In this document: positions 3,219 through 44,665 of the stretch, piece after piece
Layout of the letters: each line of letters begins with the position of its first letter
Numbering within the stretch: the first letter of the stretch is position 1
Origin: Anthoceros angustus
Taxonomy: Eukaryota > Plantae > Anthocerotophyta
Direction of reading: 5' to 3'
Length of the DNA: 64,000 bases
Assembly (NCBI GenBank): GCA_010909165.1
Contig: MU008161.1
Location: forward strand, 1,922,001-1,986,000
Notes under the pieces: generated by a model
What the model was told of the DNA's origin: nothing
Databases searched by the model: none
Seen by the model: the letters and a program-made list of their open reading frames with translations, nothing else
Position numbers and translations under genes: made by a program

Positions 3219-6200
3219 ATGGCGGAACTGCCTCTTCCTGCCGCGCTGGTGGAGCTGCTGGATGAGCTGGAGTCCCAGTCGCCGAGCCTGTCGGCTCTCC
3301 CTCCTCCTGCGGGTTCCACTTCATGGGGCGCCTACTTCCTGGACGGCGAACACGAAGATAGGTGGGACGTTCTTGCTCTGGAGCTGGAGGAACTGCTCAA
3401 TCAGCTCAAGTCCCAGTCGCCTGCGGGTCTCACTTCCCGGGGCACATCCTTCCTGGGCGGTCTACATGAAGATGAAGGTTGGACTGAACCGCGTGAAGAT
3501 GAAGCAAATAAACATGAAGCGAGTGTAGGTGCAGGTTCGTCTGAAGTGAGACATGATGAAGATGAAGGTCCGACCGATGAAGACGAAGGTTCGAATGAGG
3601 ATGAAGCGTGGCAAGATGAAGATGAAGGTGAGTCCATGCGGGAGGTGCGCTTGCGCATCATGACCGCTATCGGCAACTGCCGTAGCCTGAGGACCATCGA
3701 CCTGAATCCCGACGGCCATGCTGGGACGTACAGCGTGAGCGACGTGGAAGCAACGGCGCTGCTCAACAGCTTGAAGCACAACAATCCAGCGCTGGAAAGC
3801 CTGAGCCTGTCCCGGTTCAAGGGATTCGGGACGGCTGAAGCGTGCAAAGCACTCGCTGCTGGCGTCGTGCGACCCATTCGCAGCAGATTGGAAGTTCTGG
3901 ATATGCAGGGGGTTGGGCTGAGTGTGGAAGGACTGGCTCATATCTCCGCAGCCTTGCGAGGCAACAGCGCCTCACTACTCTACATGTTGCTTCTCGATGA
4001 CAACGACATGATAGGGGATGCTGCCGGGGCGCGGCACATTGCCGACATCATCACCCACTCGCCTGCACTGCGATACTTGGGGCTGATCGGGATAGGAATG
4101 GATGCTGCGGGCGCCGGGCTGATTGCAGACGCTTTGGTGCGAACCAACACACTGGACCTACTTCTTATCGGATATGACCGGCAGAAGGATCCCGAGCAGG
4201 CAGCCATGTTAACTCGTCTCGTGATTGCATTGACTGGCGATGCCTCCTCCTCGCAGTCTCACACTTCACGTGCCGCTGCTTCAGCCAACCGTTCCATCAC
4301 CAAGCTCTGGCTTGAGGTACGCGGGCTGGCAGGAGGCAATGATAGCGCTGCGGAGGCTGGGCTGAAAGAAGCTGTGGCTGCCATGCTTCTCTCCAACACC
4401 ACTTTGAAATTCCTCCATGTGACCAGCTTTTTCGTGACGCGGGGGTTGTGGGCACTGCCTCGCCACAGCAGCATCACCACACTTCAACTGCTCCACCAGC
4501 ATTCCCTGGATGAGGAGGAGCTGGATCCTCTGCTGCTGTCAATCCTGCAGGAGTGCACCAAGCTGCAGGTGCTGACACTCAGGTTCGACAAACCCTACGG
4601 GGCGAGCAACTTCACCAAGGAGTTGTTCCAGGGCTTGGAGCAAAACAAGCCTAGCGTCAAGAGGCTGGAGTTGGATGGCTGGGATGGGCTGGACGACCAC
4701 ATGTTCCAGGACCTCATTCAATCTCTGTCCACCAACACCAGCCTGGACCACATCTCCATCAGGGGCAGCTCCTGGGAAAAGCAAGGCAAAGCCGAACGTT
4801 TGGAGAAAGCGTTGAGGGATACGAGACTGAAGCTGCTTCATCCGCAGCTGCTTGCGTTGCTTGCAGAGCTGGAGTCCGAGTCCCCAGCGCTGCAAGAACT
4901 CCCATCCGAGGATGTGTGGGGGAGCTACTTCGATTGCCAATGCCAGGTCGGGGAGTGCCAACACCGCGGGGAGTGGCAGGGGGAGGTGCGCCTGCGCCTG
5001 CTCACAGCCATCGGCAGATGCCGCACACTGAGAAAGATCAATCTGAAACCTCTACGCTCGGCGGGTGACAGAAGCTTGTGGCCGGTAGAGGCGTTGGCGC
5101 TCTTATCAGGCTTGCAAGACAATCGTGTGCTGCAGAAGCTGGATTTGTGTGGCTACATGGGCTTTGGGACCACAGCAACCGGCGTGCTGCAGGCACTGGC
5201 TGCCGTCATCGAGAGATCCTACCGCTCGTTGGTGATTCTGGATTTGCAAGATATGGGATTGCGTGCAGAGGGAGTGGGTGACCTCGCTGCAGCCCTCCGA
5301 CGCAATGGCACCTCAGTCCTGTGCCACTTGGATTTCTCTGGGAATGACATCGGCAATGCTGTCGGGGCGCAACACTTGGCCCACATCCTCACCAACTTGC
5401 CCACGCTCCGCGGTCTCGGGATTAGGGAAATAGGGATGGAGGAGGAAGGCGCCGTGGTGATCGCACAGGCCCTGGCGCGCACCACCACACTCACCTGGCT
5501 TTGCATCGGACACATGGAGCCACGGAACCCAAGGCAGCCAGGGTTCACGATTCCACTGCTCGACGCTTTGGTGTGGCCTGAGTCCGACGCATCTCATGAC
5601 CTAGCGTCGGGCCCCAGCCCCATCAAGGAGGAGGAGGAGGAAGACGATCTGTATTACTATGACTTCTGGTGGGGATTGAAGAAGTGGAGTGAGCGAAGCA
5701 AGCACTTCTTCATGGATACTGCTCACTCTGCTGCTCCTATGCCTTCGTCAGGAACTCATAGCCCAGGGCGTGGTGTGACTGGCACGCCGGATCATGATGC
5801 GGCCACGAGTCTGCACCAGGCTCAAGATCCTCCTGCTGCCTTTTACAATCGCTCCATCACAGAGCTTCTTCTTTTCTGTCCGGGAGGCCAGGAGGCCGTG
5901 GAGTCGGGGTTAGGAGAAGCCCTGGCTCGCGTCCTTGGCTCTAACCGGGCTCTGAAAAAGCTTAGTGTTGCCAGCTTCTTCGTCACACGCGGATTGGGCG
6001 CTCTACGTGAAAGCAGAAGCATCACCAAACTCACAGTCACGCACACGTGGTTTGCCGACGACGACGACATGGATCCTGTTCTCATCACCATCCTTGAGGA
6101 GTGCAAGACTGTCAAGGAGCTGCAGCTTGAGTTCCACAAGCCCTTTGCTTCATCCGACTTCACCAAGCCCTTTTTCCGAGGGTTGCACAACAACCGCAGC

Positions 6201-9200
6201 ATCAAGAGGCTGGTGTTGGATGGCTGGGATGGCCTGGATGACCACATGTTTCACGACTTGATGATGTCTCTGCGAAACAACTCCAACAGCGTTCTAGAGA
6301 ACATATCCATCAAGGAAACATCATGGGAAAGCGAAGGCAAAGGGAAACACATTCAGAACGCTCTCATCAAAAACAGAAACATACGCACAAGATCAAGCCC
6401 TGGGCGGCAGGGTAAGTGGCCCAAGCTAGGTAGCTTACCGCGTCTGTTTTACTCTCTCCACTCAGAAACCACAAACACAGACCTGACAGAGCTCTTCTAT
6501 TCTCACATTCGCAGGTTCGTCAGAAGAAGTGCCACAGCAGGTCGCCGCAGGTATGAAACCACCCACTCCATGCATTCGTTCCCACTTCCAAGTAGTTGTT
6601 GGGTTGTTGCGGATGCAGCTGATGCATTCGTTCCCACTTCCAAGCAGTTCTGGCTGATGCAACTGGTTGGCAGTGTGACAATTGACTGATTTCATTGGCT
6701 GTGTGTGTGGTCACCGTAATAATACTCCAGTTCCTGTTAACGTTTGTGAGGATCCGGAGCTGCTCGCCCTGCTGGCCGAGCTCGACTCACCTTCGCCTAC
6801 ACTCCGTAGCCTTCCCGGTGTGAAAGCCTTTGGGCAGTTGTTCAAGAACGACGGTGGGCATCCAAAGGCGGAGCTGGAACTGCGCTTGCGCCTTATGACG
6901 GCTATCGGTAACTGCCCCACCCTCACATCAATCGACCTCGACTCCCTGCGAAATAACAACTCCTACCAGAGGGCGATGGCAGAGGCGACGTTGCCACTCG
7001 TCAACGGCGACGGCGCACTGGATGCTTCTCAGACGCGTGGATTTTACAGGGTGACGGCGGCAGAGGCGACGGCGCTCTTGGAAGGCCTAGCATCCAACGC
7101 AGTGTTGGAACGCCTGTACCTGACCGGGTACGATGGTTTTGGAACAGGTGAAGTCTGCCTTGCACTCGCTGCTGCCTTGCGATCCACCCGCACCTTGCGG
7201 GTTCTGGATATGAGATACACTGGCATGACTGCCGATGGACTGGGTCACATAGCTGCAGCCCTGCGACGTAAACCCCGCACAGTGCTTCGCCGATTGAGTC
7301 TCTCTGGGAATCCGAGGATAGGAGAAGGTGCTGGAGCAAAACACCTGGCTGACATCCTGACCACCACTCCCACGCTTCTCAGCCTGGGGATTCGGGATAT
7401 AGGGATGGATTATGCGGGAGCAGTGACGATAGGGACTGCCCTGGCACAGAGCCCCACTCTTTACAGGCTGAGTATAGGATATCATCACGGGTGGAGCCCG
7501 GAGCAGGCGGGGATGACGGCCACCCTGTTAGCCCGAGCACTGACCCCTGGTATGGCGGACGCAGAGCAGGAACCTCAAGGTGTTGCTGCCAAACCCCCAT
7601 CTGCTAACGGGTCGGTCACAGAACTCAGGCTACTAGTATGGGGAGCAGGAGAGCAGCCTGTCTCCCCTGCGCTGGCAGAAGCTGTGGATCGTATGCTTCG
7701 GTTCAACAGGTCTTTGAAACATCTCCACATTTCTAGCTGCTTCATAAGCCGCGGATTGGAGGGACTGAGTGACAACAGCGCTAGCAGCATCATCCGTGTG
7801 ACAGTTCGGCATGGTGGTTATAGTGATGGTGAAGATTACTGCAAACTGATGCCAATCCTACAGAGGTGCCGGAAAGTGGAAAGTTTGCACCTTAAGCAGA
7901 TGAATGTAGGATCATCTAACCTCTCGGAGACGTTTTTCAAGTCCCTGCAAAAAAATCCCCACCTGAAAGAGTTGGTACTGGATAACTGGGAAGGGCTGGA
8001 TGATGATATGTTTCAAGCACTGATGCAAGCTCTGCAAGGGAACACCAATTTGGAGAGAGTGTCGTTCGAAAACACTCTCTGGAAAAGACAGGGAAAAGGC
8101 GCTGCAGTCGATGAAGCACTACGACAAAATAAGGAATACCGACGAGCGTTAGCAGGAGTTCCGACGATGCCCGTCAAATCATGTCGCCTGGTATTGTGTG
8201 GATTTCCATATGCAGGTAAGCGGTCTAAATCCTTTTTGCTTCTGTCTTTGTCTCTGGAGCAGCATTGTTGCTAACTGATTTTCTTGCTCCTGTGTTCTTC
8301 TCCTAGGAAAAACGACCATACTAAACACCTTGATGGAAACAGAAGGAAACTATGCTGAAATCACGGGCGACACAACTTTAGAGGGAACACCTCGAACGCG
8401 AGGATTTGAGGTAAAAGTACTAAAAGAAACTACAGCATTGAGGATTACGGTTTGGGATCTTGCAGGACATAAAGAGTATCACGCCCTTCATGATCTTGTG
8501 TTTCCAAATGGAAATAATTCTTCTTTATTTATGTTTGTGTATAATCCGTTCAAGGTTGGGGACAATACAAATCCGGACTTCAAAGCTTTGAAGCACCGCA
8601 ACGATTTCAAAGCAGAGTTTATTTATTGGCTCAAGTTTATTGCTTCTAATTCGAAGGTAACGCAACAGGTTAAGCCATATATTCATGTAGTAATTACTTA
8701 TGGTGACAAGTTAGAAGGTAGTAGATATTCTATTGGAATATGCGAGCAAATGGCAGTGGTGAAGGATGAATTCAAGAATATTGTGGAGATTTCAGATGAA
8801 CCTGATCACATCCATGGGCAAAGCTGGAATGATGTGTACACCCTTAGTAAAAAAATAGAGCAAAAGGTCCAACAACTTGTTCGGCAGTTACCTCCGATCC
8901 CTAATATTTGTGAGCAGACACGTATACATGTGCAAAGATGGGCAACACAGCAACAAGGTATGCCGATCATTTCGATCGATAAGTTTATTGAGTTGTTCCT
9001 GGATACATGCAACACGGCATTACGGAGTCCACTTATCTCGCAAGATTACCGAAGATTTCTTATGGATTTCATTGAAAAAGATGATAGTTGGAAAGTAGTA
9101 GCATCATACCTCAAGGATTGTGGGGAGGTTATATATTTCCAGCAGTCGGATCTTATGGTGGTAGACCTAAAGTGGTTAGGAATGGGAGTTTTTGGTGAGC

Positions 9201-11238
9201 TGGTTAGTATATTTGGTGAACCACGACATGGAAGAGATTGGCTTCAACTTCAAAATGGGTTCATAAGCAAAGATGGATTGAGGCAACTTCTAAAAATATC
9301 TTTGGACAAGGTTGGGTTTGGTATGACCAGTGGAAGTGAGGAACAATTCATCCACTTGATGCTTGAATTACATCTTTGTTTTGAAAGTAATGTTGAAGCA
9401 GGTGAAGTGCGCTATTTTATACCCATATGTGCATATGGAGAAGGAGACATAATAGGTGTTGATCGACAATTAGCATGGCCTTCACACGGCGACAATCATG
9501 ACTATATCTTTATGGGTATGCGTTTACAATGTGATAACCAAAATTGCACTTTTTTAACGCCAGGGTTTTTCCCTCGCTTGCAGGTATAGAAGAACATTTA
9601 AGCTTGTGTTTTCTCTTAATATTTACGTGCTCGTACCTTGATCATATTATGTTTTCTTGTTCCTCACTACTTACATTATTCATTTCTTGATATCGGTGAT
9701 AGGTATTATTCCATAATTATGCATCCAAGCATAATAGTCCAATCGATTGGACAGAATTGCAAGCCAACTCCATATTTATATCTGCAGGATTTCTCGATAT
9801 CTTTGTGGAATTCAATGCTGAAATAGGTTGTCACATAGATATCTTAATCCGATCAACTGAAGGTTATTTGAGGTCTCAGTCGTTCTTGCATGAATATATC
9901 ATACCCCAGATTCGTGCATTTTGTGCCTCGTACGAGGGCTGTCCAGGGGTTACACTTGTTGAAGGTGTTCTTAGATGTGAATGTGTTGAATCCCTCACCC
10001 TATGTAGATATAGGGAAAGCCAGTGTATCCTGGCAGATGAGCTCGTCAAGAAGGTGATTGCTGAGAAAAAAAGGGGCTATGCACACTACACTCAGTCTTG
10101 GGCAGATATCTCCGACAACGCTGAAGGCAAGCCACCTATTTTAAGGGCCAACAAAGAGTATGCAAGTGTAATTGATGGTCATGTTATCTTTGGGCGAAAA
10201 GAGTACCTTGCCAAAGCTGAGGTCGAGTTCCAAGGTTCGTACATCTCATTTATGTGTGTGGATAGGCTGTTTCAGATGTCCGGGATGTGCAGATATGCAG
10301 TATAGAATTTCTCTGGAGGTTGGATATGTAACTTGTGCATGTATACTTGTGCATTCTTCCTTGCAAACTCTGAGGTTGCTCCTGTGGCAGAATGCAGATC
10401 CAACAGCAGCTTCTCGGGTGAATCCTCCACTGTACAGCTATCCCCGCAAGTGAAGGCTAAGCAGAAGGGACAACACATTCATGAAAGTTATGCTAACAAA
10501 AGCGTTGACGCAGGCAAACGGAGAGGTTTGGCAGTGATTATGAGCATGGAAGAGGACAGACCTGGAGGAGGTGTAGACAGAGGGCGACTTGAAACTCTTC
10601 TGAAGACCTTGAAGTTTGACACCGAAATTGTGGTGGACGATTCTGAGGAGATCAAAACATGTCTGAAGCAAGTTGTCAAGCTCCAACAGCTAGCTAACGA
10701 CGATTGCTTTCTGTTTTGCATTAATGGTCACGGGGGGATGGAAGAAGACGGAAGACTATACATCCTCATGAGTGGAACCGGCAAGGAGAAGCTTTATGTT
10801 GATGATGATATTTTGAAGCCCATCACTGAATGCAGGTATCTGGCCAAGAAGCCCAAGGTGTTTGTGATCAATGCTTGTCGAGGCACATGCAGCCTTGTCG
10901 CCAGCAAGAAGGCCGAGGGCGCGGACGTTGAGGGGAGCCAAGTCGTGAGCAAGAGAGCCGGAGAAGTTCGACCCCTGGATTCTGTGACCGATTGTCTGGT
11001 TGTTTTCTCCACGAGTCATGGAGACGTATCGTTCAGAGATGCCGAGAAAGGGTCAAACTTTATCACAGCTTTGGTGGACGCCATCGTCGAGGGCTCTCGA
11101 ACAGCAGCAGATCTGTTGAGCATTTTAACACGCGTGATTGACACGGTCACTCAGATGGAGGTCCGGCAAGGATCTGAGATAAGATTCCAGTGTCCTGTGG
11201 TCTACACCACACTCACCAAAAGGCTATACTGGTCTTAA
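3219..11238 (+). CDS. LRR(x3 modules)-ROC-COR (TORNADO1-like ROCO) protein with C-terminal caspase-like peptidase C14 domain; predicted exons 3219-6411, 6515-6550, 6731-8215, 8307-9583, 9703-10234, 10391-11238 (7371 nt, 2456 aa)
   Basis: All five introns are GT-AG and splice in frame. RI-like LRRs. P-loop GFPYAG|KT rebuilt across intron 3, switch RTRG, G3 WDLAGHKEYHALHDLVFP, TRN1-type COR motif FLTPGFFPRLQV|LFHN. The last exon has RPGGGVD, CINGHG, KPKVFVINACRG, SFRDAEKGSNFI and QCPVVYTTLTKRLY. Confidence 0.85.
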
Positions 11239-12224
11239 CCATTCCATGCTCTGGATTCGCTAGCCTGGCCAGCGTGAGTTAGGGTGTGGCCATGGCCCAT
11301 CATAAGTGACCTTCAATCAACTGTGAGGTATTGCTTCCAGCAAGACACTGTCGGTGCAGCAAACTGCTTCTAATACGGCTTCCTCATTTCTCCTTTTCTG
11401 CTCCTTTCTAAAGTTCGGGCTCGCATGCAATGGCAGGAGAGACGTCTCACAGACCCCTTGTGTGGATGAACGGGTAATTGATAGCTCATGGCGGTCAGGG
11501 AGGGAAGGACGAGCGAGTTGTGGAGCTGTAGCTGTGTCGTCTATCAGCGATGTTTCTTACACCTTTCCTACCTTGACCTTTTGAGGATCAAATACCTACC
11601 GTGACCTTTTGAGGATTATTGGATCCCCTTTCAGCTCCTGCTATCCGTTATCAAAGGAATCAAGACAATGTCTTCCAGAAACCTTCATGTTGACACCATT
11701 ACGCTCCAACACGGGAGACTGCAAAACCAACCTGCAGCCATCAGCAAAAAAACCGAAGTGGCATTTGTGTGTTGATCACAAACGTGAAACTCCTATCCTG
11801 TCAGAGGCCACAGTATCCAAAAAATGCATCATGCAGAATGACAAGTATCTGCTAAAGAACGCATCCTGCGCAGTGATTTGCAACACCAGGCAGGTGCCAA
11901 GTCGGCAGTTTCCTCACCGCCGGTAGTTGCAGACATGCATTGCTCTGCTGCCTCCTACAAGTCCCAAGAATCATCAACTCCATGTTGCAAGCCTCAAGAT
12001 GCTTGACATGGTGACTGCTGGTTTCGAGGATGAGTTTTCACTTGGAGAATTGAAATGAAAAATTCGTAGAGCCCATCGTCCATGTCGCTGGGAAAAACTC
12101 GGACCTACCTATTACCTACTCCAGATTCTGCCGCAATATGCCTGCGTAACCCTCTAAGGACCGAGGGTCAGATTTGGGTCCAGAGGCGAGGGCCCCTGCG
12201 AGTTGGGTTCTGCGGTGGGCTGCA

Positions 12225-14708
12225 ATGGCGAGCCTGAGGAGGGTTGCGTCTCCGGTGTCGCCGGCGGGGTTGTATCGGCTGCTTAAGAGGTGCATGTTGG
12301 AGAAGGATGTGGTTGCTGGAAGGAACGTCCATGCTTTGTGTGTGAGGGTTGGATTAGCCTCCGACCCTTTCTTGGCCCACCACATCATTCGCATGTATGC
12401 TGCTCAGGGCTGTTTGCATGAGGCGAGGCAGGTGTTCAGGAAGGTGGCCACTCCCGACCAGTTTGTTTGGGCTTCCATAATCGCAGCACATGGGGAGCTC
12501 AGGGAGCCTGAGCAGGCAATCAGATTGTATGAGGAGATGAGAGAATTGGGTGTGCAGGCGAATGACTACGTTTTTGTGGCAGTCCTGAAGGCATGTGCCA
12601 GTGCAGGGGATCTGGTCTCTGGCAGGCTGGTGCATGCTGATGTTGCAGGCACTCTGTTTGAGGCCAATGCCTTTGTTGGGAGCACTCTGGTGGACATGTA
12701 TGCTAAATGTGGGAGCTTGGAAGATGCTCGTGCAGTGTTTGATAAGGTGAAGTCCAAGGATGTGGTGACATGGAGTGCCATGATTGCAGGGTATGCACAG
12801 GAAGGGCTCGGTCGGGAGGCTCTCGATCTCTACAAGTTGATGCAGCAGGATGGCAGGACTCCGGCTAATAGTTTCACTTTTGTGTGCATTCTTAAGGCTT
12901 GTGGCAGCATAGGGGCCATACAGGAGGGGAAGAGAATTCATGAACAGATTCTGGAGAGGGGACTGGAATGTGATGTGCGCATCGGGAGTGCCTTGGTGGA
13001 CATGTATGTGAAATGCGACAGCCTCGGAGATGCTCGTGCTGTCTTCGACGATCTGCCCATGAGGAATGTGGTCACATGGAGTGCCATGATTGCAGGATAT
13101 GCGCAGCACAGACTTGGTCAGGAGGCCCTTGCACTGTATGACAGAATGCAGGAGCAAGGTGGAGTCGTTCCGGACTCTGTGACTTTCGTGTCGGTTCTGA
13201 ATGCGTGTGCCAGTATTGGTGCCTTGAAGAAGGGGAAGAAGATCCATGCCGAGATCCTGGACAGAGGGCTGGAAGCTGAGGAATTCGTGCGAGTCGGCTT
13301 GCTTGACATGTATGCGAAATGCGGGAGCCTGGATGATGCTTGGACGGTGTTTAACAGGTTGCCTACCAAGAATGCAGTGACATGGAATGCATTAATTGCA
13401 GGATGCGTGCAGCATGGGCTGGGTCATGAAGCCCTGCAGCTTTACGATAGTATGAAGCAGGATTTCACGACGAGCCCAACCACAGTCACATGTGTTTGTG
13501 TGTTGAAGGCATGTGGAAGCATTGGAGCCTTGCAAGCAGGGATGCGTATTCATGCAGAGATTCTTGAGAAGGGACTGGAAGGTAATCTGTTTGTGGGTAA
13601 CACATTGGTAGACATGTACGGAAGATGTGGGAGGGTGGAAGATGCCTGCTCTGTCTTTGAGATGTTGCCAACGAGAGACGTTGGGACATGGACTGCACTT
13701 ATCAATGGCTTCGGCCAATGCAATGACTTCGAAATGGCTATGCAGTGCTTCGAGGAGATGCAGCAAGAAGGCGTGGAAGCTAATGCTGCTACATTTACCT
13801 GCCTTCTTGTGGGATGCAGCCATGTGGGTCTGGTGAGCCAGGGGCAGTATTACTTTAAGATTATGGTTGAAGAGTATGGGATCGCACCGACCATCGAGCA
13901 CTACAATTGCATGGTCGATCTCCTTGGTCGGGCAGGGCACTTGGATGAGGCAGAGGCCATGCTACGAAGCATGCCTTTCCGGTGGCAGGAAAATGTCGTC
14001 GGATGGAAGACTTTGCTGACAGCCTGCAAACAGCACGTAGATATTGAGCGAGCAAGGATATGCTTTGATCGTCTATTACAGCTGGAGCCTCAACACGCTG
14101 CCGGATATATGCTGATGGCAAACATCTTAGCCAGCTGCGGCGAGTGGAATGAGGTGGAGAAAATAGAGGAGATGCGGAAAACAGCTGGTGCTCACAGAAA
14201 GCCCGCGAAAACCTGGATCGAAGTGAACCACAAGGTGCAGGAGTTCATTGTAGGAGAAGAGCGGGACGACATCGTTTCGAAGCTGAGAAGCATGAATCTA
14301 CTGCTGAAGGAGGAAGGACATGTACCTCACACGGACCTGGTGCTGAAGCTAGTATCAGAGCAGGAGAAGGAAGATGCTCTGTGTGGACATGCCGAGAAGC
14401 TGGCTCTGGCCTTCGGCCTACTCACCACTCCGGACGGTACTCCGCTGCTCGTCACAAAGAACCTCCGGATGTGCAACGACTGCCATAGCGGGACCAAGCT
14501 CCTCTCCAGGATAGAAAAACGAGAGATTGTAGTCAGGGACGCACATCGTGTACACCATTTTAGCAATGGCTCGTGCTCTTGCGGAGATTTTCACTTGACA
14601 GTTCAAATCGGGAAACAATCCGAAACTAGTTCCGACTCCAGCTGCGTCACTTCAACAGATCCGATACGGAAGACGCCTCATCATCCTCCTCGTTCAAGAA
14701 CCCGGTGA
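12225..14708 (+). CDS. PLS-class PPR protein with E domains and DYW:KP-type deaminase-like domain (organellar RNA editing factor)
   Basis: Intronless ORF with P-L-S triplets (VVTWSAMIAGYAQ / TFVCILKAC / LVDMYAKCGSL) and E motif. C-terminus has KPAKTWIEV, CGHAEKLALAFGL, KNLRMCNDCH, CSCGDFH and a 37-aa tail. First ATG is at 12225. Confidence 0.92.
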   Translation: MASLRRVASPVSPAGLYRLLKRCMLEKDVVAGRNVHALCVRVGLASDPFLAHHIIRMYAAQGCLHEARQVFRKVATPDQFVWASIIAAHGELREPEQAIRLYEEMRELGVQANDYVFVAVLKACASAGDLVSGRLVHADVAGTLFEANAFVGSTLVDMYAKCGSLEDARAVFDKVKSKDVVTWSAMIAGYAQEGLGREALDLYKLMQQDGRTPANSFTFVCILKACGSIGAIQEGKRIHEQILERGLECDVRIGSALVDMYVKCDSLGDARAVFDDLPMRNVVTWSAMIAGYAQHRLGQEALALYDRMQEQGGVVPDSVTFVSVLNACASIGALKKGKKIHAEILDRGLEAEEFVRVGLLDMYAKCGSLDDAWTVFNRLPTKNAVTWNALIAGCVQHGLGHEALQLYDSMKQDFTTSPTTVTCVCVLKACGSIGALQAGMRIHAEILEKGLEGNLFVGNTLVDMYGRCGRVEDACSVFEMLPTRDVGTWTALINGFGQCNDFEMAMQCFEEMQQEGVEANAATFTCLLVGCSHVGLVSQGQYYFKIMVEEYGIAPTIEHYNCMVDLLGRAGHLDEAEAMLRSMPFRWQENVVGWKTLLTACKQHVDIERARICFDRLLQLEPQHAAGYMLMANILASCGEWNEVEKIEEMRKTAGAHRKPAKTWIEVNHKVQEFIVGEERDDIVSKLRSMNLLLKEEGHVPHTDLVLKLVSEQEKEDALCGHAEKLALAFGLLTTPDGTPLLVTKNLRMCNDCHSGTKLLSRIEKREIVVRDAHRVHHFSNGSCSCGDFHLTVQIGKQSETSSDSSCVTSTDPIRKTPHHPPRSRTR

Positions 14709-16187: not shown

Positions 16188-19100
16188 TCAAGGGTGCTTT
16201 CTATCTCCAACCAGAAAACTATGCACCAGTCCTTTCCTGTCTGTCCACCAGCTTTGGCCTGGCTGCTTCCAGGCTCCAATTTGCACTCTCCTAGCCTGCA
16301 TCTCCAGACCCTCCTCCCACATGTGAGCAGCGGTGTATATGTTTGCCATCAACACATATGCTGCGGCATCTTGCTCATCTAACTTCACTGCTTCATAGAA
16401 AGCACATCTTCCCACCTCCAAGTTGCTCCACGTTCCACAGGCACTAAGCAGAGTGTGCCAAACTGCAGCAGGAGGAACTACAGGCATTGCCCGTGCCAAT
16501 GCAAGTGCGGTGTCGAGTTGCCCGGCACGACCCAGGAGATCAACCATGCATGTGTAGTGCTCTGCGGCGGGAGTGATGCCGTAGTCACTGGTCATTGCAT
16601 TGAAGTACTCTTGCCCCTCATTCACTAGGCCCGAATAACTGCATGCTGTCAGTACACTGAGAAATGTGATGGAGTTTGGCTCAGTGCCATCGACTTGCAT
16701 TCTCTGAACCAAGTGAAAGACTGCTTCACAGTCTCCTTGGCAGGTGTATCCTGCAATCAGCACATTCCAGGCCACGACATCTCGTTCGGGTAATGCATCG
16801 AACACCTGGTGTGCATCGACCATGCTCCCGGCCTTTGCATACATGTTTATTAAGCTTTTGGCTACCAGGACATCCGCTTGCAGCCCTTTTTCTTCTATCT
16901 CAGCATGAAGATGCCTTCCTGGATACAATGCAGCCACATTTGCACAAGCTTGTAAGAGGCACATAAATGTCACTGCATTGGGTAGAGTGATGCCTTCATC
17001 TCGCATAGCACTGTAAAGATTCAGGGCTTCCTGGGCCATGCCCTGCTGGGAATATCCTGCTATCAGAGCGGTCCACGTCACGACATCCTTCTCACCCAGT
17101 CCGTCAAACACGCCCTGGGCATCCTCTAGGCTGCCACACTTTGCATACATGTTTACCAGGCTGCAACCTACAAACACATCAGCCTCAAGTCCTTGTTCTC
17201 GAATTTGTGCATGAAGCTGCTTCCCTTCCTGCAAAGCTGGGGTACCCACACCCGCACATGCTTGCAGAAGGCACACAAATGTCATGGAATTGGGTGGAGC
17301 GATGCCTTCTTCTCGCATAGCACTGTAAAGATGAAGGGCTTGCTGGCCCAGATCCTGCTGGGAATATCCTGTTATCAGAGCGGTCCATGTCACAACATTC
17401 TTTTGGCCAATTCTGTCAAACACGTCTTGGGCATCCTCAAGGCTGCCACACTTTGCATACATGTTTACCAGGCTGCAACCTACCACCGCATCAGCATCAA
17501 GTCCTCGTTCTCCAATCTGTGCATGAAGCTGCTTCCCCATCTGCAAAGCCACGGTACCCACACATGCACAAGCCTGCAGGAGGGACACAAATGTTACAGA
17601 ATCGGGTGCAACAATGCCCTCTTCTACCATAGAACTGTAAACACCAAGGGCTTCTTGGCCCATGCCTTGCTGAGAGTATGCTGCTATCATGGCATTCCAT
17701 GTCACCACAGCTTTCTGAGGCAGTCCATCAAACACGAACTGAGCATCCTCTGTGCTGCCACACTTTGCATACATGTTTACCAGACTGCAACCTAAGAATA
17801 CATCAACTTGAAGTCCTCGCTCTCCAATCTGAGCATGAAGCTGCTTTCCCTTCGCCAAAGCTGGGCCACCTACACTCGCACATGCCTGCAAGAGGCAAAC
17901 AATTGTTGCGGGATTGGGTGGAGCAACGCCTTCTTCTTGCATTGAACTGTAAAGACAAAGTGCTTCCTGACCCATGCCCTGCTGGGAATATCCTGCTATC
18001 AGAGCCGTCCACGCCACCACAGATTTTTCATCAAGCCTGTCAAATACTTCCTGTGCATCCTGAAGACTGCCACACCGTACATACATGTTCACCAGACTGC
18101 CACCTACCATCATATCAGCCTGTAATCCATGCTCAGCTTCAATCTGTGCATGAAGCTGCTTCCCCTTCTCCAAAGCCAGTGCACCCATACTTGCACATGC
18201 TTGCAGAAGACACACAAATGTCACAGAATTGGGTGTAGTGATGCACTCTGCTCGCATTGCACTGTAAAGATGAATAGCTTCCTGGGCCATGCCCTGCTGC
18301 GAATATCCTGTTATCAAAGCAGTCCAAGTGACAACATCTTTTCGATCAAGGCTGTTGAACACTCTCCTTGCATCCTCTAGGCTGCCACACTTTGAATACA
18401 TATTGACCAGGCTGCAACCTACAAACACATCAGCCTGAAGCCCTTGCTTTCCAATCTTTGCATGAAGCTCCTTCCCCTTCTCCAAAGCCTGCATACCCAC
18501 ACTTGAGCATGCTTGCAGGAGGGAAACAAAAGTCACAGAATCAGGTACACTGATGCCTTCTTCTTGCATAGCACTGTAAAGACGAAGGGCCTCCTGACCC
18601 ATACCCTGCTGGGAGTAGCCTGCTATCATGGCATTCCATGTCACCACATCCTTTCTGCCAAGTCCATCAAACACTCTTTGACCGTGTTCCAAGTTCCCGC
18701 ACTTTGCATACATGTCTACCAAGCAGTTAGACACAAACAAATCAGGCTCAACCCCACTAGCCAACACGTCAGCATGCACCTGCTGCCCAGTCTTCACGTC
18801 TGCTCCCCTTGCGCAAGCCTGTAGGGCTGCTACAAACACATGGCCATCTGGCTTCACATTTGACCTCCGCATCTCTCGATACAGCTCTATGGCCTGACCA
18901 GCTCGCCCGTGTTTAACATGGGCAGAAATTATGGACGACCACATGAAGGCATCTGGTTTGCCAACCACGGTGAACACATCCATCGCTTCTTGTAACCTGC
19001 CATGAGAAGTATACATCCGCATGATGTGGTTGCACAAGAACGTGTCCGACTCACACCCATTCTCCAGTGCGAGGGCATGAACCCGGCGACCCATCACCAG

Positions 19101-19391
19101 ATCCCTTTTCACAACACATTGCTTGAGGACTGTGTACATGAGAGAAACAGAAACACAGCAGTATGCCTGAACCAAAATTCCCAGAGCCTCCACAGCCTCA
19201 GTGAGCTGCCCCTGCCCCTGCTGGCAAAGTCTGCTCACGGTCTCAGCCGTTGGGAAGTTAAATGTAAAGGCACCACGACCCATCTGCATATCCAGAGCAG
19301 TTACACATCCACGCAAGCTCGATTCTTGAAGCTGAGGACCTGGTGGGCCTTCCTCAGCTGGAAGGCAGGGCACCTCCCCACCAAAGCGCAT
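16188..19391 (-). CDS. PLS-class PPR protein ending in a WW-type PG box/partial E+ (no DYW); possibly a young pseudogene
   Basis: 1067-aa intronless ORF of highly similar PLS triplets ending KQPGQSWWTDRKGLVHSFLVGDRKHP*. In-frame TGA stops lie at both ends with coding-like sequence beyond them. Confidence 0.88.
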   Translation of the reverse strand: MRFGGEVPCLPAEEGPPGPQLQESSLRGCVTALDMQMGRGAFTFNFPTAETVSRLCQQGQGQLTEAVEALGILVQAYCCVSVSLMYTVLKQCVVKRDLVMGRRVHALALENGCESDTFLCNHIMRMYTSHGRLQEAMDVFTVVGKPDAFMWSSIISAHVKHGRAGQAIELYREMRRSNVKPDGHVFVAALQACARGADVKTGQQVHADVLASGVEPDLFVSNCLVDMYAKCGNLEHGQRVFDGLGRKDVVTWNAMIAGYSQQGMGQEALRLYSAMQEEGISVPDSVTFVSLLQACSSVGMQALEKGKELHAKIGKQGLQADVFVGCSLVNMYSKCGSLEDARRVFNSLDRKDVVTWTALITGYSQQGMAQEAIHLYSAMRAECITTPNSVTFVCLLQACASMGALALEKGKQLHAQIEAEHGLQADMMVGGSLVNMYVRCGSLQDAQEVFDRLDEKSVVAWTALIAGYSQQGMGQEALCLYSSMQEEGVAPPNPATIVCLLQACASVGGPALAKGKQLHAQIGERGLQVDVFLGCSLVNMYAKCGSTEDAQFVFDGLPQKAVVTWNAMIAAYSQQGMGQEALGVYSSMVEEGIVAPDSVTFVSLLQACACVGTVALQMGKQLHAQIGERGLDADAVVGCSLVNMYAKCGSLEDAQDVFDRIGQKNVVTWTALITGYSQQDLGQQALHLYSAMREEGIAPPNSMTFVCLLQACAGVGTPALQEGKQLHAQIREQGLEADVFVGCSLVNMYAKCGSLEDAQGVFDGLGEKDVVTWTALIAGYSQQGMAQEALNLYSAMRDEGITLPNAVTFMCLLQACANVAALYPGRHLHAEIEEKGLQADVLVAKSLINMYAKAGSMVDAHQVFDALPERDVVAWNVLIAGYTCQGDCEAVFHLVQRMQVDGTEPNSITFLSVLTACSYSGLVNEGQEYFNAMTSDYGITPAAEHYTCMVDLLGRAGQLDTALALARAMPVVPPAAVWHTLLSACGTWSNLEVGRCAFYEAVKLDEQDAAAYVLMANIYTAAHMWEEGLEMQARRVQIGAWKQPGQSWWTDRKGLVHSFLVGDRKHP

Positions 19392-22942: not shown

Positions 22943-25900
22943 ATGCAGCGATGCAGCAGCAGGCTCCATGCGTCCTGCAAGTCCCGTGCTCCGGTAGCTG
23001 GAATCTGCATCTTGTGTGGTTGCATTTGTTACATCAGTCGCTGGAATGCTTCGATTTCGTTAGCTGGTCTGAGATGTGGGAGGAATTCCGTCGTTCAGGG
23101 GTTTTGCAAGAGGCTTTTGAGCAGTGCGACAGGCCGTTCGGCTCTGGAGGAGTGGGAGATTAAAGCCACCAAGGAAGCTGGAGGCGAGCCGTGGGAGAAG
23201 CTGTCGTCTTCGTCTCCTGAGGTTTGATTGAAGATTTTTCTGGGTCTGATTTTGGGGCAGTTGAGGCTGGGAGTGAGGAGTGCAGGATGTGGGTTAAATT
23301 GTGTGATGGACGTGGGGAGGTGGCATGGTCATGTGAAGGGGATTCACATCAAGCCAGTGTATACGAAACACGATGTGCCAGATGGAGCAGATGAAATGCC
23401 CGGAGTGTGGCCGTACACCAGAGGGCCTTATGCCAGCATGTACACAAAGCATCCATGGACGATACGGCAGTATGCAGGTTTCAGGTGTGGAGGTCGTGTA
23501 CTGGAATTTTGTCTGGGCTGCTCATTTCATCCTGCCAGTTTGTCTTGATTAGGGTTCTCTTATGATTGACACGGATTCTGATTGCTGGATGATCTTTGTT
23601 GTAGCACGGCGGAAGAGTCAAATGCATTCTACCGGCGTAATTTGGCTGCTGGGCAGAAAGGATTGAGTGTAGCTTTCGATCTGGCTACACATCGGGGGTA
23701 GGCTGTCCGCATCAGTTTGTATGTTCAGCCAATGGTGGGTGTTTAGATGCAGGGGAACCGGAAGCTGATTGGGTTCTTGTTGCACTCAAAACCTGTACAG
23801 GTACGATTCAGACCATCCAAATGTTGTTGGCGATGTAGGCATGGCTGGTGTGGCGGTGGACTCTGTGGAAGACATGCGCCGCTTGTTTGAAGGGATTCCA
23901 CTTGACCAGATGAGCGTGTCCATGACCATGAATGGGGCTGTGCTCCCAATTATGGCATTCTACATTGTTGCAGCAGAAGAGCAAGGTCGTTGAGCCTCCC
24001 ATTTTTGTCTGCGTTGCCATGTGTTGACTGCTCGCTGTGCAAGGTTGCTTGTGCCTGACATGGTTCAATTCTATGGCAGGAGTACAGGCTAGCAAACTAT
24101 CTGGTACCATCCAAAATGATATTCTGAAGGAGTACATGGTTAGGAATACCTACATCTACCCACCCGCACCCTCTATGAGGATTGTGGGTGACATTATGGC
24201 ATATTGCTCCAAAAATATGCCACGGTTCAACTCGATTTCTGTTTCTGGATACCACATGCAGGAAGCTGGAGCAGACAGGTATGTTATCGGGGACATGGGG
24301 ACGGGGAGAGGGGGAGGGCTGATGCTGCTATCCGTAGTAGGGAGATATTTTCTCAGCTCGGCAGGCCTCTGATCCTGGCTGTGTGTGTGCAGCGCTGTGG
24401 AGCTGGCCTTCACCATTGCAGACGGATTGGAATACATCAGGTGTGGCCAGGCAGCTGGTTTATCAGTGGACCAGCTGGCCCCAAGAATCTCCTTCTTCTG
24501 GGCCATTGGGATGAACTTCTACTTGGAGGTTCGACTTGTGCAATCAGCCATGTTCGTTCATGTGCTTCCAGTGAACCTTACTGTTCACTAACTGCAGATT
24601 GCTAAAATGCGTGCTGGACGGCGGCTCTGGGCCAAGCTGGTCAAGGTTAGCACCAGTCTCTTGTTATTTGATGCGGTGGAAAGGAAAATGCCATCCTTAT
24701 CAATTGTGTACTCGGGTAAGCTGTCTTTGTGATGCTGATACCGGTGCTGTTTTGGCAGGAAAAGTTTAGTCCCAAGAATGAGAAGTCCATGATTCTACGA
24801 ACTCATTGCCAGGTGGTGACTTGATTGTGAGTGGAACTGAAGATAACTCAATTTGCTGCATTTATCCACAAGTAACTGCAGCTTCAACAGTAGCAGTGGC
24901 AACATGTGAATAATTGAACGTTCCTTTGAAGGGCAGCAGTAGATATAGTGGCTTTCTCACGGCGTATGTTGGTCTGTGAAGACATCTGGATATAGTCTCA
25001 CTGAGCAGGACCCCTTTAATAACGTGGTTCGGACAACAGTGGAAGCTATGGCAGCTGCATTGGGGGGAACACAGTCACTACACACGAACTCCTTTGATGA
25101 GGTATCTACAGATCTGTTTCCACGATGTGAACACAGCATCATATTCTTCTGTTGATCTCCTGTGTTCCTAGTATTCAGGCATTGGCCCTGCCATCAGAGT
25201 TGAGTGCCAGAATTGCACGTAACACGCAACTGATTCTTCAAGAAGAGACAGGTATCACAAAGGTCAGCTGACTTCTTTCGAAGACCTCTCTTGGAAAGCT
25301 TTTCACCCATCCTTCTTTCAGGACAGAGTATGGCGATAAAGTAACATGTGCTCCAATGGGATCGCCCTCGTGTTGCAGGTAGCAGATCCATGGGGTGGAT
25401 CATACATGATGGAGAGCCTAACATCTGAACTCGAGGCTAAAGCACTGGAAATCATTAAGGAAGTGGAGGATTCCGGTGGGATGACTAAAGCAATCGCTTC
25501 AGGCATGCCAAAACTGCGCATTGAAGAGTGTGCTGCTCGTAAGCAGGTATCACCTAACAGCAACCGCGAAATCACCAAGTCCAGTGCTTGGAGTGGTTAG
25601 CGAACTAACCCGTGATGATGTCTCCTGCTCAATCAGGCTCGTATAGACAGTGGGCAGGAAGTAGTCGTGGGTGTGAACAAATATCGACTAGAGAAAGAAG
25701 AAGTTGTGGACATTCGATCCATTGATAACAAAGCAGTTCTCCAGAGTCAGCTGCAGCAGTTGAAAGACATCCGCACATCACGGGACAATACCAGGTCTGT
25801 AAGATTAGAAATCGACCCTGTCATCTTCAGAGACTCTGTATTAAATATTTTGTTGGTTTCCCTGTTTCTGCACAGAGTGGAGACGGCCTTGAATGCTCTA

Positions 25901-26769
25901 ACGGAGGCAGCTACAAGCAGCAGCAACGAACCCAATCTGTTGGCTCTGGCAGTGGATGCAGCCAGAGCTCGCTGCACACTAGGAGAAATTTCACATGCTC
26001 TGGAGAAAGTTTGGGGACGCCATCGAGCTAACGACCAAGTAATCAGTGGAGCCTACAGGTTCATTCTCGTCTTACACAATGCAATTTCCTGTTCTACATT
26101 CGTCAACCCCTCCAAAATGACTGGTTTCTGGAATCTGCATATATCACAGTGGGGAGTACGGAGAAGGCAACGACTTCGCTCGTGCACGAGCACAGGTGGA
26201 AGAGTTTTCAAAACGGGCCGGTAGGCGTCCTCGTATTCTGATAGCCAAAATGGGTCAAGATGGGCACGACCGGGGAGCAAAGGTATGAACTAGATTATTC
26301 TGTTTCCTCTTTTTTCTCGGCAGTGTCGGGCATGTTTCATGCGTATGCAAATCTGTCGCTGCTGCAGGTGATTGCAACAGGGCTGGCGGATCTGGGTTTC
26401 GACGTGGATATCGGGCCTCTGTTCCAGACTCCAGCCACAGTTGCCAAGCAAGCCATGGAGGCAGATGTGCATGTTGTTGGCGTCAGTTCTCAAGCTGCAG
26501 GCCATCGAGTCCTGGTCCCCCAGCTCATCCAAGCTTTACAACAGGAAGGTGTTGGCGATATTGCCGTCATCGTTGGTGGCGTTATTCCTCCCCAGGACTA
26601 CAGCTTCCTTTTCCAGGCGGGAGTGGCATGTATCTTCGGTCCTGGGACAGTCATCCCTGTGGCCGCCATGGAGATTTTGTCCAAAATCAAGGTCCCTCTA
26701 GAAATGAAGGGAAGCGTGGACCTTGCAGACACCGTTGCTGCAAGACAGCGCGTCACTGGCAATGTTTAA
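22943..26769 (+). CDS. MUT: Methylmalonyl-CoA mutase (adenosylcobalamin-dependent), probably mitochondrial, many exons; start approximate
   Basis: Motifs [86 protein letters not shown] and the B12-binding [10 protein letters not shown] (26247-26276). Spliceosomal introns. The N-terminus is rich in Arg and Ser. Confidence 0.95.
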
Positions 26770-41341: not shown

Positions 41342-44137
41342 GGTGGCACTGGACACGACCCAACATTTCTGTTGCAACCGGCAGGTGTCCAGGAGGAGGG
41401 AGGAAGTGGGGGGGGCAGGAGAGGGGGGTTGGAGGTGCTACCATTGGCTGGCAACTGACTTTGAACTCACCTGCAAACTGCAATTTGCTGCAAGCTGTGC
41501 TGTGTGCTGGGGTTGCTTCCTGCTTGCTTGCCAATGAAGCCCTCTCTTGGACGGCTCGTCACGTCAAGCCAAAGCAAGCAGTGTTCCGGCCCGGCTGCCC
41601 ACTTTGTTATGAGGGCGCGGGGGCCAGGCGGCAGGGCCCAGGACACGGACCCATGTGCCCATCTGGGACATCCGACACCAGGCCGATTTCTGCCCAGGCA
41701 GAGCATATTCCCGTCTTTCCGGCGTTGACATATATATTAAGGGCCTGGCACTGGCAGGCAGGCAGGCAGACTGGCTGGAACGCCATGGAAGTTGAAGGCA
41801 GGGCAGGCATGGAAGTTGAAGGCAGGGCAGGCAAAGGGATTGGAGTCGGAGTTGGGTTGGAACTGGAACTGGAACTGGAATTGCAATACTTGACGGTGCG
41901 CCCGAGGTGAAAGCGGGCTCCTCCTACGATTTGCTGCGATCCCTCGAGGTACGGATCATGGCGTAACCCTGTTTCTTTATGCTGATTATATGAGTGCAAG
42001 TACAAGGGCGGCCATGCCCTGCGTAAGCAAGCCTGAGAGCTTTGACCCCGGGAATCTCCATGCTGCGCTCTGCTCTGCTCTGCTCTGCACACAGGTCCTG
42101 CTCCTGCTCCTGCTCCTGCTTTAGCTGCCTCTAGAGGCACACTGTTCCACAGCCTCACTCACATCCTTCCTGCCTCCGCTCTAATGACAACAGGACGAGG
42201 AGAGGAAAGGAGAGATGCAGGGGCCCCAGGGGAGAAAAAATCCTTCGCTGGCCTGGCCCTGGTCTCGGGGGTGGTGCCGTGTAAGGGAATGGGATGATGG
42301 GCCTGGGGGGCTCGGATCTGATTTGCTGTGATGTGATGTGAGAGAGAGAAGGAGCAGGGGGGGAAGAGGCAGACTGGCAAGCGCTCGCCCAGGCTACTTG
42401 CTGCTGCACTGCTCATTTATGCCCGCACATTGAATTCCAGGTGGCGTCACCAGGGCATGTGGGCAGTCCGGCCCCCCGGGTCCGCCCCACATTCATGCTT
42501 TTGGAACAGTTCGTGCTTTTGCGGCCATGTGGGCGCCTGGAGCCTGCGGCCGGGCCGGATGCCCGCCCTCTCTGCCCGGGCCCCCCCTTACACAGACCAG
42601 TGCATGCACGCACTTCGTCACACTAAATCTTCTCCTGCCTGTGCAGGGCAGAGCATAATTCGAACTTTTGGATTAGGCGGCACCTAATCCCAACAGCCAC
42701 AGCCACAGGCACACGCGGAGGTTTGTTTGTAGGCTTGTCACTTGTGGATGTGGCTTTGCTGCTGCTTTCCGGTGCCAGCATGTGAAACTGTCTTTTTCTC
42801 TTCTACACCCTTTGTTGCATCATTTTTCTGAGAAAGCATGCAAGCTTGCAAGGAGTGTATCTGGTGCAGGTGGTTGTGCGCCACTCATGGACGCATCATT
42901 CGCCGGCAACTGAATGCACTGCTTCTTCCTGCCTTCCTTCCTCCCTTGCTTCTTCCTCTGCTGGGCCCTTCCGTCTGTTCCTTCTCTGCTGCACTGTTGC
43001 GTCTCCTGCTGCAGCCTCCAGCATTTATGGCTGCTTTCATTGACTTGGGTCCAACACAACCCAACTCCCAACTCCACTGTCGTGTCATGTGCCTGCAGAC
43101 CACAGCCCCGTCCCGGAAAGGCCGTCCCGTTCCGTTGCGACAGGACCCAGGATCGGCTACCGACAAGGGAGGAAGAAGGGCACGGGGGCCCGCCCAATCA
43201 GCCAGGAGGCGACGACGAGGTCTTGGCCGCCGCTCCAGCCCCGCCCTCTCATCACTCTCCTGCCTTGCTTTCCTTATTGCTTCCTAATCGCTTTCCGATG
43301 CAGTAATGCTGTACCTGCCTTTACCCCCTATAATATTTAGGTCAAGTGTGGGTTAAGTGGGTCAGTGTGGCCTGACACCCTGCCTGGACAGCCTCCGCCT
43401 GCATGGAAGCCAATGTGTGATGAGAAGATTGTACAAGGCAGGCCACGCCAGCCATGGCCCATGAGCATGCTGTACTTCCACCCGGACCCAGCGCCGCCCC
43501 CTGCCACCCCACCTTGTTTCTTGTTTTTTCAATACGCCTGTCCCCGATATGTCATCAGCTCCCAGATCTGCACTCTCCTTCCTCCACTGTTTCAAGCTCC
43601 GGCCCTCACCGCCCGTCGCATCTATTTTATCGCCATCCATTCTTTAAACGCATTTTATCACATCGTCCCAATCACCACGGTACACCCTTTCATACTGGCT
43701 TCCTCTGTCAGCCTTGGGCGTTCGCTGGCAAGCCACTGCCAGCTGCTATATCCTACTTCATAGCCTTCTTCACATAACAATCACTTTTCATAGCCTTCTT
43801 CACATACCAATCACTTTTCAAAGAACATTGTCATGTGCTATTTAGGTAGGATATAATGTTTCAATCGAACTTTCAACAAACGTCATGTGGCACGTTTTCA
43901 AAAACAACCATCACATCGCTTTTTGGAATTAAAAGAGTTGTTAAAATACAATATGGCATAAGATGCACGATATTCCCAAGTTTCACAACAATCCAAACAT
44001 ATATATTTGGTTCACATTCACAATTGTTTTTTGTATGAGCTTCAAGCCTTTACTACAATGAAAAAAAGTGGGATGAACCCATTTGACGGTGGACTATATG
44101 GTGGAAATCTACAAAGTCATGATTAGTATAAATCATA

Positions 44138-44665
44138 GCTATGATTCATACCAAGAGAACTTTGAGAGGCACTTAACGTAAACGTGGTCTATGATTCATA
44201 CCAAGAGAACTTTGAGAGGCACTTAAGATAAATAATGATCATTTTAGAAAATTGACTGTACAATTATACAAATTGAAAACGTAATTTTCACGTCCACTTG
44301 GTTTCATTGGCACAACTTGTCCAACATTATCATAGTTGATAATGTCCATGTCATCAATTCTTTTTGAAAGCAAAAAGAGAGGAAATCTTTACGTGATACA
44401 CAAAGATGGGATGGTTTCATCTAAACCAAAGGAAACCTGTATGTGAGAGAACCCCTGATGGACAGGATGAGTTGGAGAACTATGCTCCATAAATACTGGG
44501 CTTTCAAGAGGCTTGAACACAAAACCCTACAGGACACCATGAGTTGGAGAGCTATGCTCCATAGTACTAGGCTTTTAACACATCTAATTACAAAACCCCA
44601 AAGACCACCCTGAGCTGAAAAACTATGCTCTATAAATATTAGGCTTTAGAAAGGTCTAAACACAG
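44138..44665. repeat. Short direct repeats: 38-bp duplicate at 50-bp spacing (~44139-44226) and ~71-bp degenerate unit x3 (~44468-44665)
   Basis: ctatgattcataccaagagaactttgagaggcacttaa occurs twice; gagttggaga.ctatgctc.ata..tact.ggcttt....acaaaaccc occurs three times. Confidence 0.75.

Follow-up and report, generated by a model that had tools for sequence, protein, structure and literature searches.

The activities of plants that have been called 'caspase-like' are assigned to unrelated enzymes. Reviews place caspases in animals only, with plants lacking them and using metacaspases (PMC5756287, PMC12521494). In a C14A caspase the S1 pocket is built from an Arg, a Gln and a second Arg (Arg87, Gln184 and Arg233 in caspase-7), and the central sheet has six strands where that of a metacaspase has eight, the extra ones being beta7 and beta8 (PMC4357240). 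A different set of described proteins bears on the locus we report here. Roco proteins, among them LRRK2, DAPK1 and plant TORNADO1, combine leucine-rich repeats (LRR) with a Roc domain and a COR domain, and carry an output domain past the COR. Their COR domains are reported to dimerise (PMC7159879). An architecture of LRR, Roc and COR with a caspase effector is known from prokaryotes (Kaur et al. 2021, PMC8195603), where conflict systems made of LRR, an AP-GTPase (Roc), COR and a C-terminal effector, sometimes a caspase, have been described.

The locus is a gene of the hornwort Anthoceros angustus, and it lies in a 64,000-nucleotide stretch of contig MU008161.1 (assembly GCA_010909165.1, positions 1,922,001 to 1,986,000 of the forward strand), which we call the window. 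Our reading, to which we give a probability of about two in three, is that an intact, transcribed plant gene of the LRR/Roc/COR kind ends in a genuine C14A-like cysteine protease domain, which would cleave at acidic residues and be activated through its Roc-COR part. What the analysis establishes is a caspase fold, a His/Cys dyad, a basic S1 pocket and an expressed fusion. Searching the literature on caspases in hornworts, Marchantia and bryophytes, with gasdermin and Roco among the terms, we found no published description of a bryophyte caspase family. The liverwort proteins of this type have only automatic database names, and we found no paper on them.

The coding region (3219..11238, forward strand) opens with an ATG at 3219 and closes with a stop at 11236-11238, its exon ends being set by transcript joints. 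Seven coding exons on the forward strand (3219-6411, 6515-6550, 6731-8215, 8307-8410, 8555-9583, 9703-10234 and 10391-11238) join to 7227 nt, or 2408 aa. Scripted checks found zero internal stops in the joined frame and GT..AG at all six coding introns. The joined model served for the frame and stop check, and searches and folding used single exons; the exon-wise searches covered the main exons, with 6515-6550 and 8307-8329 left out as separate queries.

The transcripts belong to the same species and derive from a single public run, marked as probably RNA, and their comparison with the gene covers the parts outside 3219-5899. The contigs match the locus with 0 mismatches and skip GT..AG introns. 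A single one of them covers 8553-9581, 9701-10232 and 10389-10963 (coordinates before a cut offset of +2): in this processed transcript the exon of the caspase is physically continuous with those upstream of it. The last coding intron (10235..10390, forward strand; 156 nt, GT..AG) appears as a joint at 10232/10389 (cut +2) with 0 mismatches and a depth of 60.8. The resulting junction, 10234|10391, makes 10391 the first base past the AG acceptor. Beyond the stop, the 3' UTR holds a 109-nt GT..AG intron on the same strand (11328..11436; joint 11325->11435, cut +2; depth 57). The gene is intact and transcribed, and it encodes a protein of about 2400 aa.

The seven-exon list omits a 144-nt in-frame stretch (8411..8554, forward strand) that can be skipped with GT..AG ends. 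Keeping it gives a 2456-aa product, and skipping it deletes the DxxG motif of the Roc core; the open reading frame 8330-9589 runs through it uninterrupted. The skip is a weak observation, made in one contig (joint 8408->8553) with a depth of 12.8 and a side of only 26. Since only this low-depth contig with its short flank records it, we read the skip as an alternative form and not the main one.

Upstream of the protease, the sequence suggests that the parts are likely to be LRR, Roc and COR. Repeated leucine-rich-repeat modules at the N terminus (3219..8215, forward strand) form the presumed sensor: three similar modules are discernible in the translated reading frames, weak Pfam matches to LRR_6 and LRR_4 fall on 6682-8271, and Pfam returned no match at E<=0.01 on 3219-6410. 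A putative Roc-type GTPase core follows (8150..8554, forward strand), with a P-loop, GFPYAGKT, lying across the 8215|8307 junction and a switch-II DxxG (WDLAGH) within 8411-8554. The Pfam Roc match (E 9.6e-4) scores 19.8 bits, under the cutoff of 27, and its residues map to 8414-8552. The COR-A-like region (8555..9583, forward strand) also stays under its Pfam cutoff, at 26.1 bits against 35.3 (E 8.7e-6). None of the PDB sequences matched the Roc-COR exon 8330-9583. Between the COR-A-like region and the caspase lies an exon (9703..10234, forward strand) that ends in phase 1, has no Pfam match and resembles the N-terminal part of the protein P0002 (E 4e-8); it is possibly COR-B.

This arrangement has a divergent relative in loci L001 and L002, from another public run, where COR-like and pre-caspase regions stand upstream of a caspase in the same order. 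The COR-A-like region shares 24% identity (E 2e-30) with the stretch upstream of the caspase in L001, and because L001 shares the order of COR plus caspase, the fusion is not a one-off. Set against the Roco proteins, the hornwort protein differs in having a caspase and not a kinase as its output, and in Roc and COR matches that fall below the Pfam cutoffs. It also departs from the animal caspases, for it has no CARD or DED prodomain and its caspase is the C terminus of a giant LRR/Roc-like/COR-like protein.

The terminal coding exon (10391..11238, forward strand) encodes a lead-in of about 40 aa and a complete caspase-type Peptidase_C14 domain, and then the stop, an assignment made with Pfam, phmmer against PDB sequences, AlphaFold and structural comparison. 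The Pfam match (E 5.4e-32) takes in profile positions 2-233 of 233 and, with the PDB matches given below, shows that the resemblance is no accident. We number the domain from the codon at 10393, and its translation is that of 10393-11235. All the motifs quoted in a preliminary description made from the DNA letters are present there (CINGHG, KPKVFVINACRG, RPGGGVD, SFRD, GSNFI and QCPVVYTTLTKRLY), and the positions it gave for the catalytic His (10729-10731) and Cys (10876-10878) are correct.

Aligned with caspase-8, the catalytic His113 (10729..10731; NGHG) falls on the SHG motif and the catalytic Cys162 (10876..10878) on QAC. The first S1 arginine, Arg56 (10558..10560), meets the Arg of DRNG, and the second, Arg215 (11035..11037; SFRD), the Arg of SYRN. 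At the S1 Gln position of QACxG stands Asn160 (10870..10872), the hornwort motif being INACRG against IQACQG in caspase-8; these residues are all on the forward strand. We counted the same positions in 16 plant-clade rows and in 144 other caspase-type domains. Arg56 is Arg in 16/16 and 132/144 of them, respectively, and Arg215 in 14/16 and 136/144; His113 is kept in 14/16 and 140/144, and Cys162 in 15/16 and 138/144. Position 160 is Asn in 14/16 plant-clade rows, and in the others it is Gln in 123/144 and Asn in 13/144. The preliminary description was therefore right about the two S1 arginines, which the plant clade conserves, and the replacement of Gln by Asn that it had noticed is real and common to those 13 other caspase-type domains. 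Three members of the plant clade (P0021, P0023 and P0006) have lost the His, the Cys or the second Arg. Judged by Arg56, Asn160 and Arg215, the S1 pocket of the hornwort domain is basic.

Two Trp residues shape S2 and S4 in effector caspases. Here the pair, that of SWR and GSWF, is replaced by Phe214 and Asn222, so the S2-S4 preferences cannot be read off the animal enzymes. The large and small halves are separated by a linker (residues 165-200; 10885..10992, forward strand) that contains Asp178, Asp196 and Asp200 and for which the confidence of the models is low. Its pLDDT is below 50 at 168-174 and 182-184 in one AlphaFold model and at 167-189 in the other (the mixed and plant-only models described below), and its sequence differs across the plant clade. 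When 160 caspase domains were compared with the 64-kb window by tblastn, only 10513-11235 matched. A Pfam scan of ten long open reading frames of the window, a scope that leaves short or spliced genes outside, contained no member of the gasdermin family.

The domain is clearly nearer to caspases than to paracaspases or metacaspases in both sequence and predicted structure. Phmmer against PDB sequences returned 162 matches at E<=0.01, and the 60 matches listed are all caspases; the best are caspase-8 (3e-15), -1, -7 and -3, with the Arg, His, Cys and Arg positions aligned. We folded the domain twice with AlphaFold, once from a mixed set of 87 aligned sequences (pLDDT 86.4) and once, as a control, from 13 sequences that all belong to the plant clade (pLDDT 80.2). 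Since caspase structures were part of the training of AlphaFold, these models are not wholly independent evidence. Both have six core strands, at 45-51, 75-81, 105-111, 155-160, 201-205 and 269-272. In both, His113 follows strand 105-111 (beta3) and Cys162 follows strand 155-160 (beta4), and from beta4 to beta5 (201-205) there is only the disordered linker of about 40 residues, with no strands. Caspases are active as beta6-beta6' dimers; a homodimer prediction for the hornwort domain scored 0.72, with one control at 0.65, a difference that weighs on neither side.

When the two models were compared exhaustively with 48,161 PDB representatives, the known structures came out in the same order for each. 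Caspase-8 (PDB 4jj7) leads with Z 30.2 and 29.4 for the mixed and plant-only models (rmsd 1.6, 32% identity), followed by caspase-3 (29.6 and 28.5) and caspase-9 (28.8 and 28.2); Sf-caspase-1, caspase-4, c-FLIP, CED-3 and Dronc come at Z 24-26. MALT1 reaches 22.7 (range 20-23), and below it are the metacaspases AtMC4 (19.2, 13% identity) and AtMC9 (18.8), legumain (17.7), and then Yca1 (16.5) and TbMCA2 (13.5). Over structurally aligned residues, identity is 26-32% with caspase-8, -3 and -9, 20-24% with more distant caspases, 18-19% with MALT1 and 13-15% with metacaspases. The top 50 matches of Foldseek are caspases throughout, and the neighbors in the ESM Atlas, by features and shape, are animal caspase clusters throughout.

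With the animal caspases the hornwort domain shares the fold (Z 28-30, rmsd 1.6-2.9 and 26-32% identity for caspase-8, -3 and -9), a dyad of His and Cys placed in xHG and xACRG motifs, the pair of S1 arginines, the layout of large half, linker and small half, and a C-terminal strand of the LTKxLY kind. It differs from them in the Asn at the S1 Gln position, in the missing S2/S4 Trp residues, in forming a separate long-branch clade, and in belonging to a plant. With AtMC4 (PDB 6w8r), AtMC9 (PDB 8a53) and MALT1 (PDB 3v4o) it shares the core fold of clan CD and the His/Cys dyad, but a metacaspase adds two strands to the sheet, works as a monomer and uses an acidic S1 pocket for Arg or Lys, and the S1 pocket of MALT1 is acidic too.

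Among 1.84 billion representatives HMMER found 1590 matches at E<=1e-3, the best full-domain ones being 37-38% identical. The best-matching sequence with a name is a partial transcript of another hornwort, Nothoceros aenigmaticus (48% identical), and the other close named matches are from the liverworts Marchantia polymorpha (MARPO_0108s0037 / Mp_6g00900), M. paleacea (Mapa_003498) and Riccia fluitans (R1flu_002472), bryophyte proteins that UniProt names automatically 'Caspase family p20 domain-containing'. All the remaining named matches are animal caspases (insects, molluscs, a tunicate, amphioxus and vertebrates). Among the matches that carry an organism name, which are a minority of the best 150, there is no bacterium. 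Searching for stand-alone relatives with the domain alone returned none at E<=1e-5 among proteins of 155-490 aa, and a plant-profile query returned only Riccia and animal caspases. A metagenome scan gave seven short contigs and added nothing, and PADLOC gave no match.

Our trees are unrooted trees of caspase domains, built without a C14B or bacterial outgroup and with the partial Nothoceros transcript left out. In them the hornwort domain groups with the liverwort proteins and with unnamed assemblies, with a FastTree support of 99, an SH-aLRT of 98 in a quick IQ-TREE run (LG+C20), and a UFBoot of 100 and SH-aLRT of 99 in a careful one (LG+C20) whose bootstrap had not fully settled. The stem of this plant clade measures about 0.7 changes per site and attaches to a poorly resolved animal backbone; given that backbone, it falls inside no recognizable animal subfamily. 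The liverwort proteins of the clade (UFBoot 100) likewise carry Asn in an INACRG-type motif, and they share the S1 arginines. They differ in being just 29-36% identical to the hornwort domain, and the Marchantia proteins differ further in carrying alpha/beta-hydrolase domains upstream and not LRR-Roc-COR. The domain belongs to a lineage of bryophyte caspase homologues that takes in the liverworts, most likely takes in other hornworts as well, and stands apart from the plant metacaspases.

Could the domain belong to C14B, as a metacaspase or paracaspase whose likeness to a caspase is limited to a few motifs? Plants are known to carry metacaspases, and the Pfam family, PF00656, spans both groups. 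The comparisons speak otherwise, with 20-32% identity and Z 24-30 for caspases against 13-19% and Z 13-23 for MALT1 and the metacaspases. The marks of a metacaspase are also absent, as the S1 pocket is basic and not acidic, both models have six strands with no beta7 or beta8, and the Cys motif is INACRG and not D(A/S)CHSG. As far as sequence and models reach, we reject this identity and consider it very improbable; the choice of C14A in the preliminary description stands, and the superposition on caspases that it proposed gave Z of about 30 and rmsd 1.6 against caspase-8, with metacaspases at Z 13-19. Another explanation is that the caspase does not belong to the plant and comes from animal contamination or a faulty assembly, for the nearest relatives outside plants are animal caspases only. 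Yet the transcripts of the same species join the caspase exon, in frame, to those before it, and the gene is flanked by a PPR-DYW gene (12174-14708), a PPR-E gene (16191-19391, reverse strand) and an RWP-RK gene (53700-55013), with one more PPR gene at 63236-63931 on the reverse strand. Moreover, no sequence from any source matches the full domain at more than 37-38% identity (the partial hornwort transcript reaches 48%), and the closest named matches are hornwort and liverwort proteins. Because of the plant-type neighbors and the same-species transcripts, with their joint at 10234|10391, we take contamination to be excluded and its chance to be negligible; the preliminary description had called it unlikely from the in-frame splice and the flanking plant genes. 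More weight is due to the idea that the fold is that of a caspase and the activity is not that of an Asp-specific protease, so that the domain either has a shifted P1 preference or acts as a non-cutting scaffold in the manner of c-FLIP. The S1 Gln has become Asn and both S2/S4 Trp residues are gone; c-FLIP, whose protease-like domain is dead, also reaches Z 24; and three members of the clade have lost a catalytic residue or the second Arg. Against this, the hornwort copy retains the His, the Cys, the oxyanion Gly and both arginines, columns that are kept in 14-16 of the 16 clade rows, which indicates selection for catalysis and for a basic pocket. We think a shifted or missing activity unlikely, and we continue to favor an active, caspase-type protease that cuts at acidic residues.

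How a protease of this type came to be in a bryophyte is a separate matter, with two candidate courses, which the preliminary description had already named. The caspase domain may have been transferred from an animal or other eukaryote into an early bryophyte ancestor and then shuffled onto plant partners, a course of events to which we give somewhat less than even odds. Among named sequences the clade is confined to hornworts and liverworts, flowering plants are reported to be without caspases (PMC5756287, PMC12521494), animal caspases are the only close relatives, and the domain partners vary, from LRR-Roc-COR in the hornwort to an alpha/beta hydrolase in Marchantia. The long stem, the position of the clade outside any resolved animal subfamily and our finding no donor sit poorly with such a transfer. 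The domain might instead represent an old lineage, passed down from an early eukaryote and then lost in many descendants, or else acquired from bacteria together with the LRR-Roc-COR part, which we regard as possible but more doubtful than not. The plant clade is monophyletic and deep, a model of bacterial caspases of the EACC1 type is weakly matched (5e-7; 29 bits, where the cutoff is 140), and the bacterial conflict proteins have the same order of parts, with sensor, GTPase, COR and a C-terminal effector protease (PMC8195603). The plant caspase differs from those of the conflict proteins in being closest to animal caspases, and our searches for a bacterial counterpart were negative, if weakly so: two motif-limited scans of 185,579 bacterial and archaeal species turned up no relative or donor, tblastn found none in plasmids, a pattern-limited scan of IMG/VR found none in viruses, and no bacterium appears among the named matches.

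How might the protein work? The LRR part would sense a ligand, and the Roc-COR part would then bring two protease domains together, switching the caspase on as in initiator caspases. We infer such activation by induced proximity because COR domains dimerise in Roco proteins and because the caspase comes directly after the COR-like region. Self-cleavage in the disordered linker, at Asp178, Asp196 or Asp200, could follow. The active protease would cut after Asp, a specificity that we infer from three residues of the pocket, one of them different (Gln to Asn). It might also cut after Glu, since Asn is shorter than Gln and may enlarge the pocket. Its targets would be death or immune substrates.

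A caspase homologue that is intact and expressed, has a basic S1 pocket and stands behind a presumed module of sensor and switch is a concrete and testable plant gene, and the hornwort copy, being unbroken, suits experiments. It raises two questions that can be put to the test. Do some plants have true, Asp-directed caspases? And has the coupling of a sensor to caspase activation, the logic of the inflammasome and the apoptosome, arisen repeatedly, or has it spread between kingdoms? We can suggest only tentatively, and with more doubt than belief, that bryophytes have a working caspase pathway of death or immunity, in which one receptor with an LRR sensor, a Roc-COR switch and a caspase output would sense a signal and cut after Asp. 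If that were true, caspase-driven cell death would not be an animal invention.

The caspase gene (3219-11238, forward strand), whose product carries a probable Roc-type GTPase domain ahead of its C-terminal caspase domain, may be transcribed in more than one form. In one low-depth transcript contig, a 144-nt stretch at 8411-8554, in frame and with GT..AG ends, is spliced out. This stretch encodes the switch-II DxxG motif of the Roc domain, and the skipped isoform would therefore probably be GTPase-defective. A transcript contig also reveals an intron in the 3′ UTR, 109 nt long and again bounded by GT..AG, at 11328-11436. Some transcript contigs match part of the last coding exon, which encodes the caspase domain, at 95 to 99% before running into dissimilar sequence (at 10693, 10930, and 10987); these most likely derive from paralogues at other genomic sites.

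Downstream of the caspase gene, the window holds several other ORFs. Long pentatricopeptide-repeat ORFs lie at 12174-14708 (forward strand, DYW type) and 16191-19391 (reverse strand, with an E motif), and a partial one lies at 63236-63931 (reverse strand). An ORF at 53700-55013 (forward strand) encodes an RWP-RK domain (E = 6.6e-24), the mark of a plant-type transcription factor family. The ORF at 25667-26221 (forward strand) matches the C-terminal end of methylmalonyl-CoA mutase (Pfam E = 7e-13), a B12-dependent enzyme family not known to be common among land plants; the ORF could be a single exon within a larger gene. An AT-rich block spans 44001-48000, where GC content falls to 0.34-0.37 against about 0.5 in the rest of the window.

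The joining of a GTPase to a caspase has an animal example in P0168, a 453-residue protein of the abalone Haliotis cracherodii named "caspase-3-like," in which a Ras/Roc-type small GTPase domain precedes the caspase domain. In our trees, P0168 falls among animal caspases, outside the plant clade. Close to one member of that clade, P0004, encoded on metagenome contig L005, there are weak NB-ARC and LRR matches (12013-12501 and 18162-18614), a few kilobases downstream of the caspase gene. In liverwort members, the caspase is preceded by one or more alpha/beta-hydrolase domains, as in P0008 of Marchantia polymorpha and P0026 of Marchantia paleacea, proteins of this architecture being named "SERAC1" in some records. 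Across bryophytes, then, the caspase domain is joined to differing partners.
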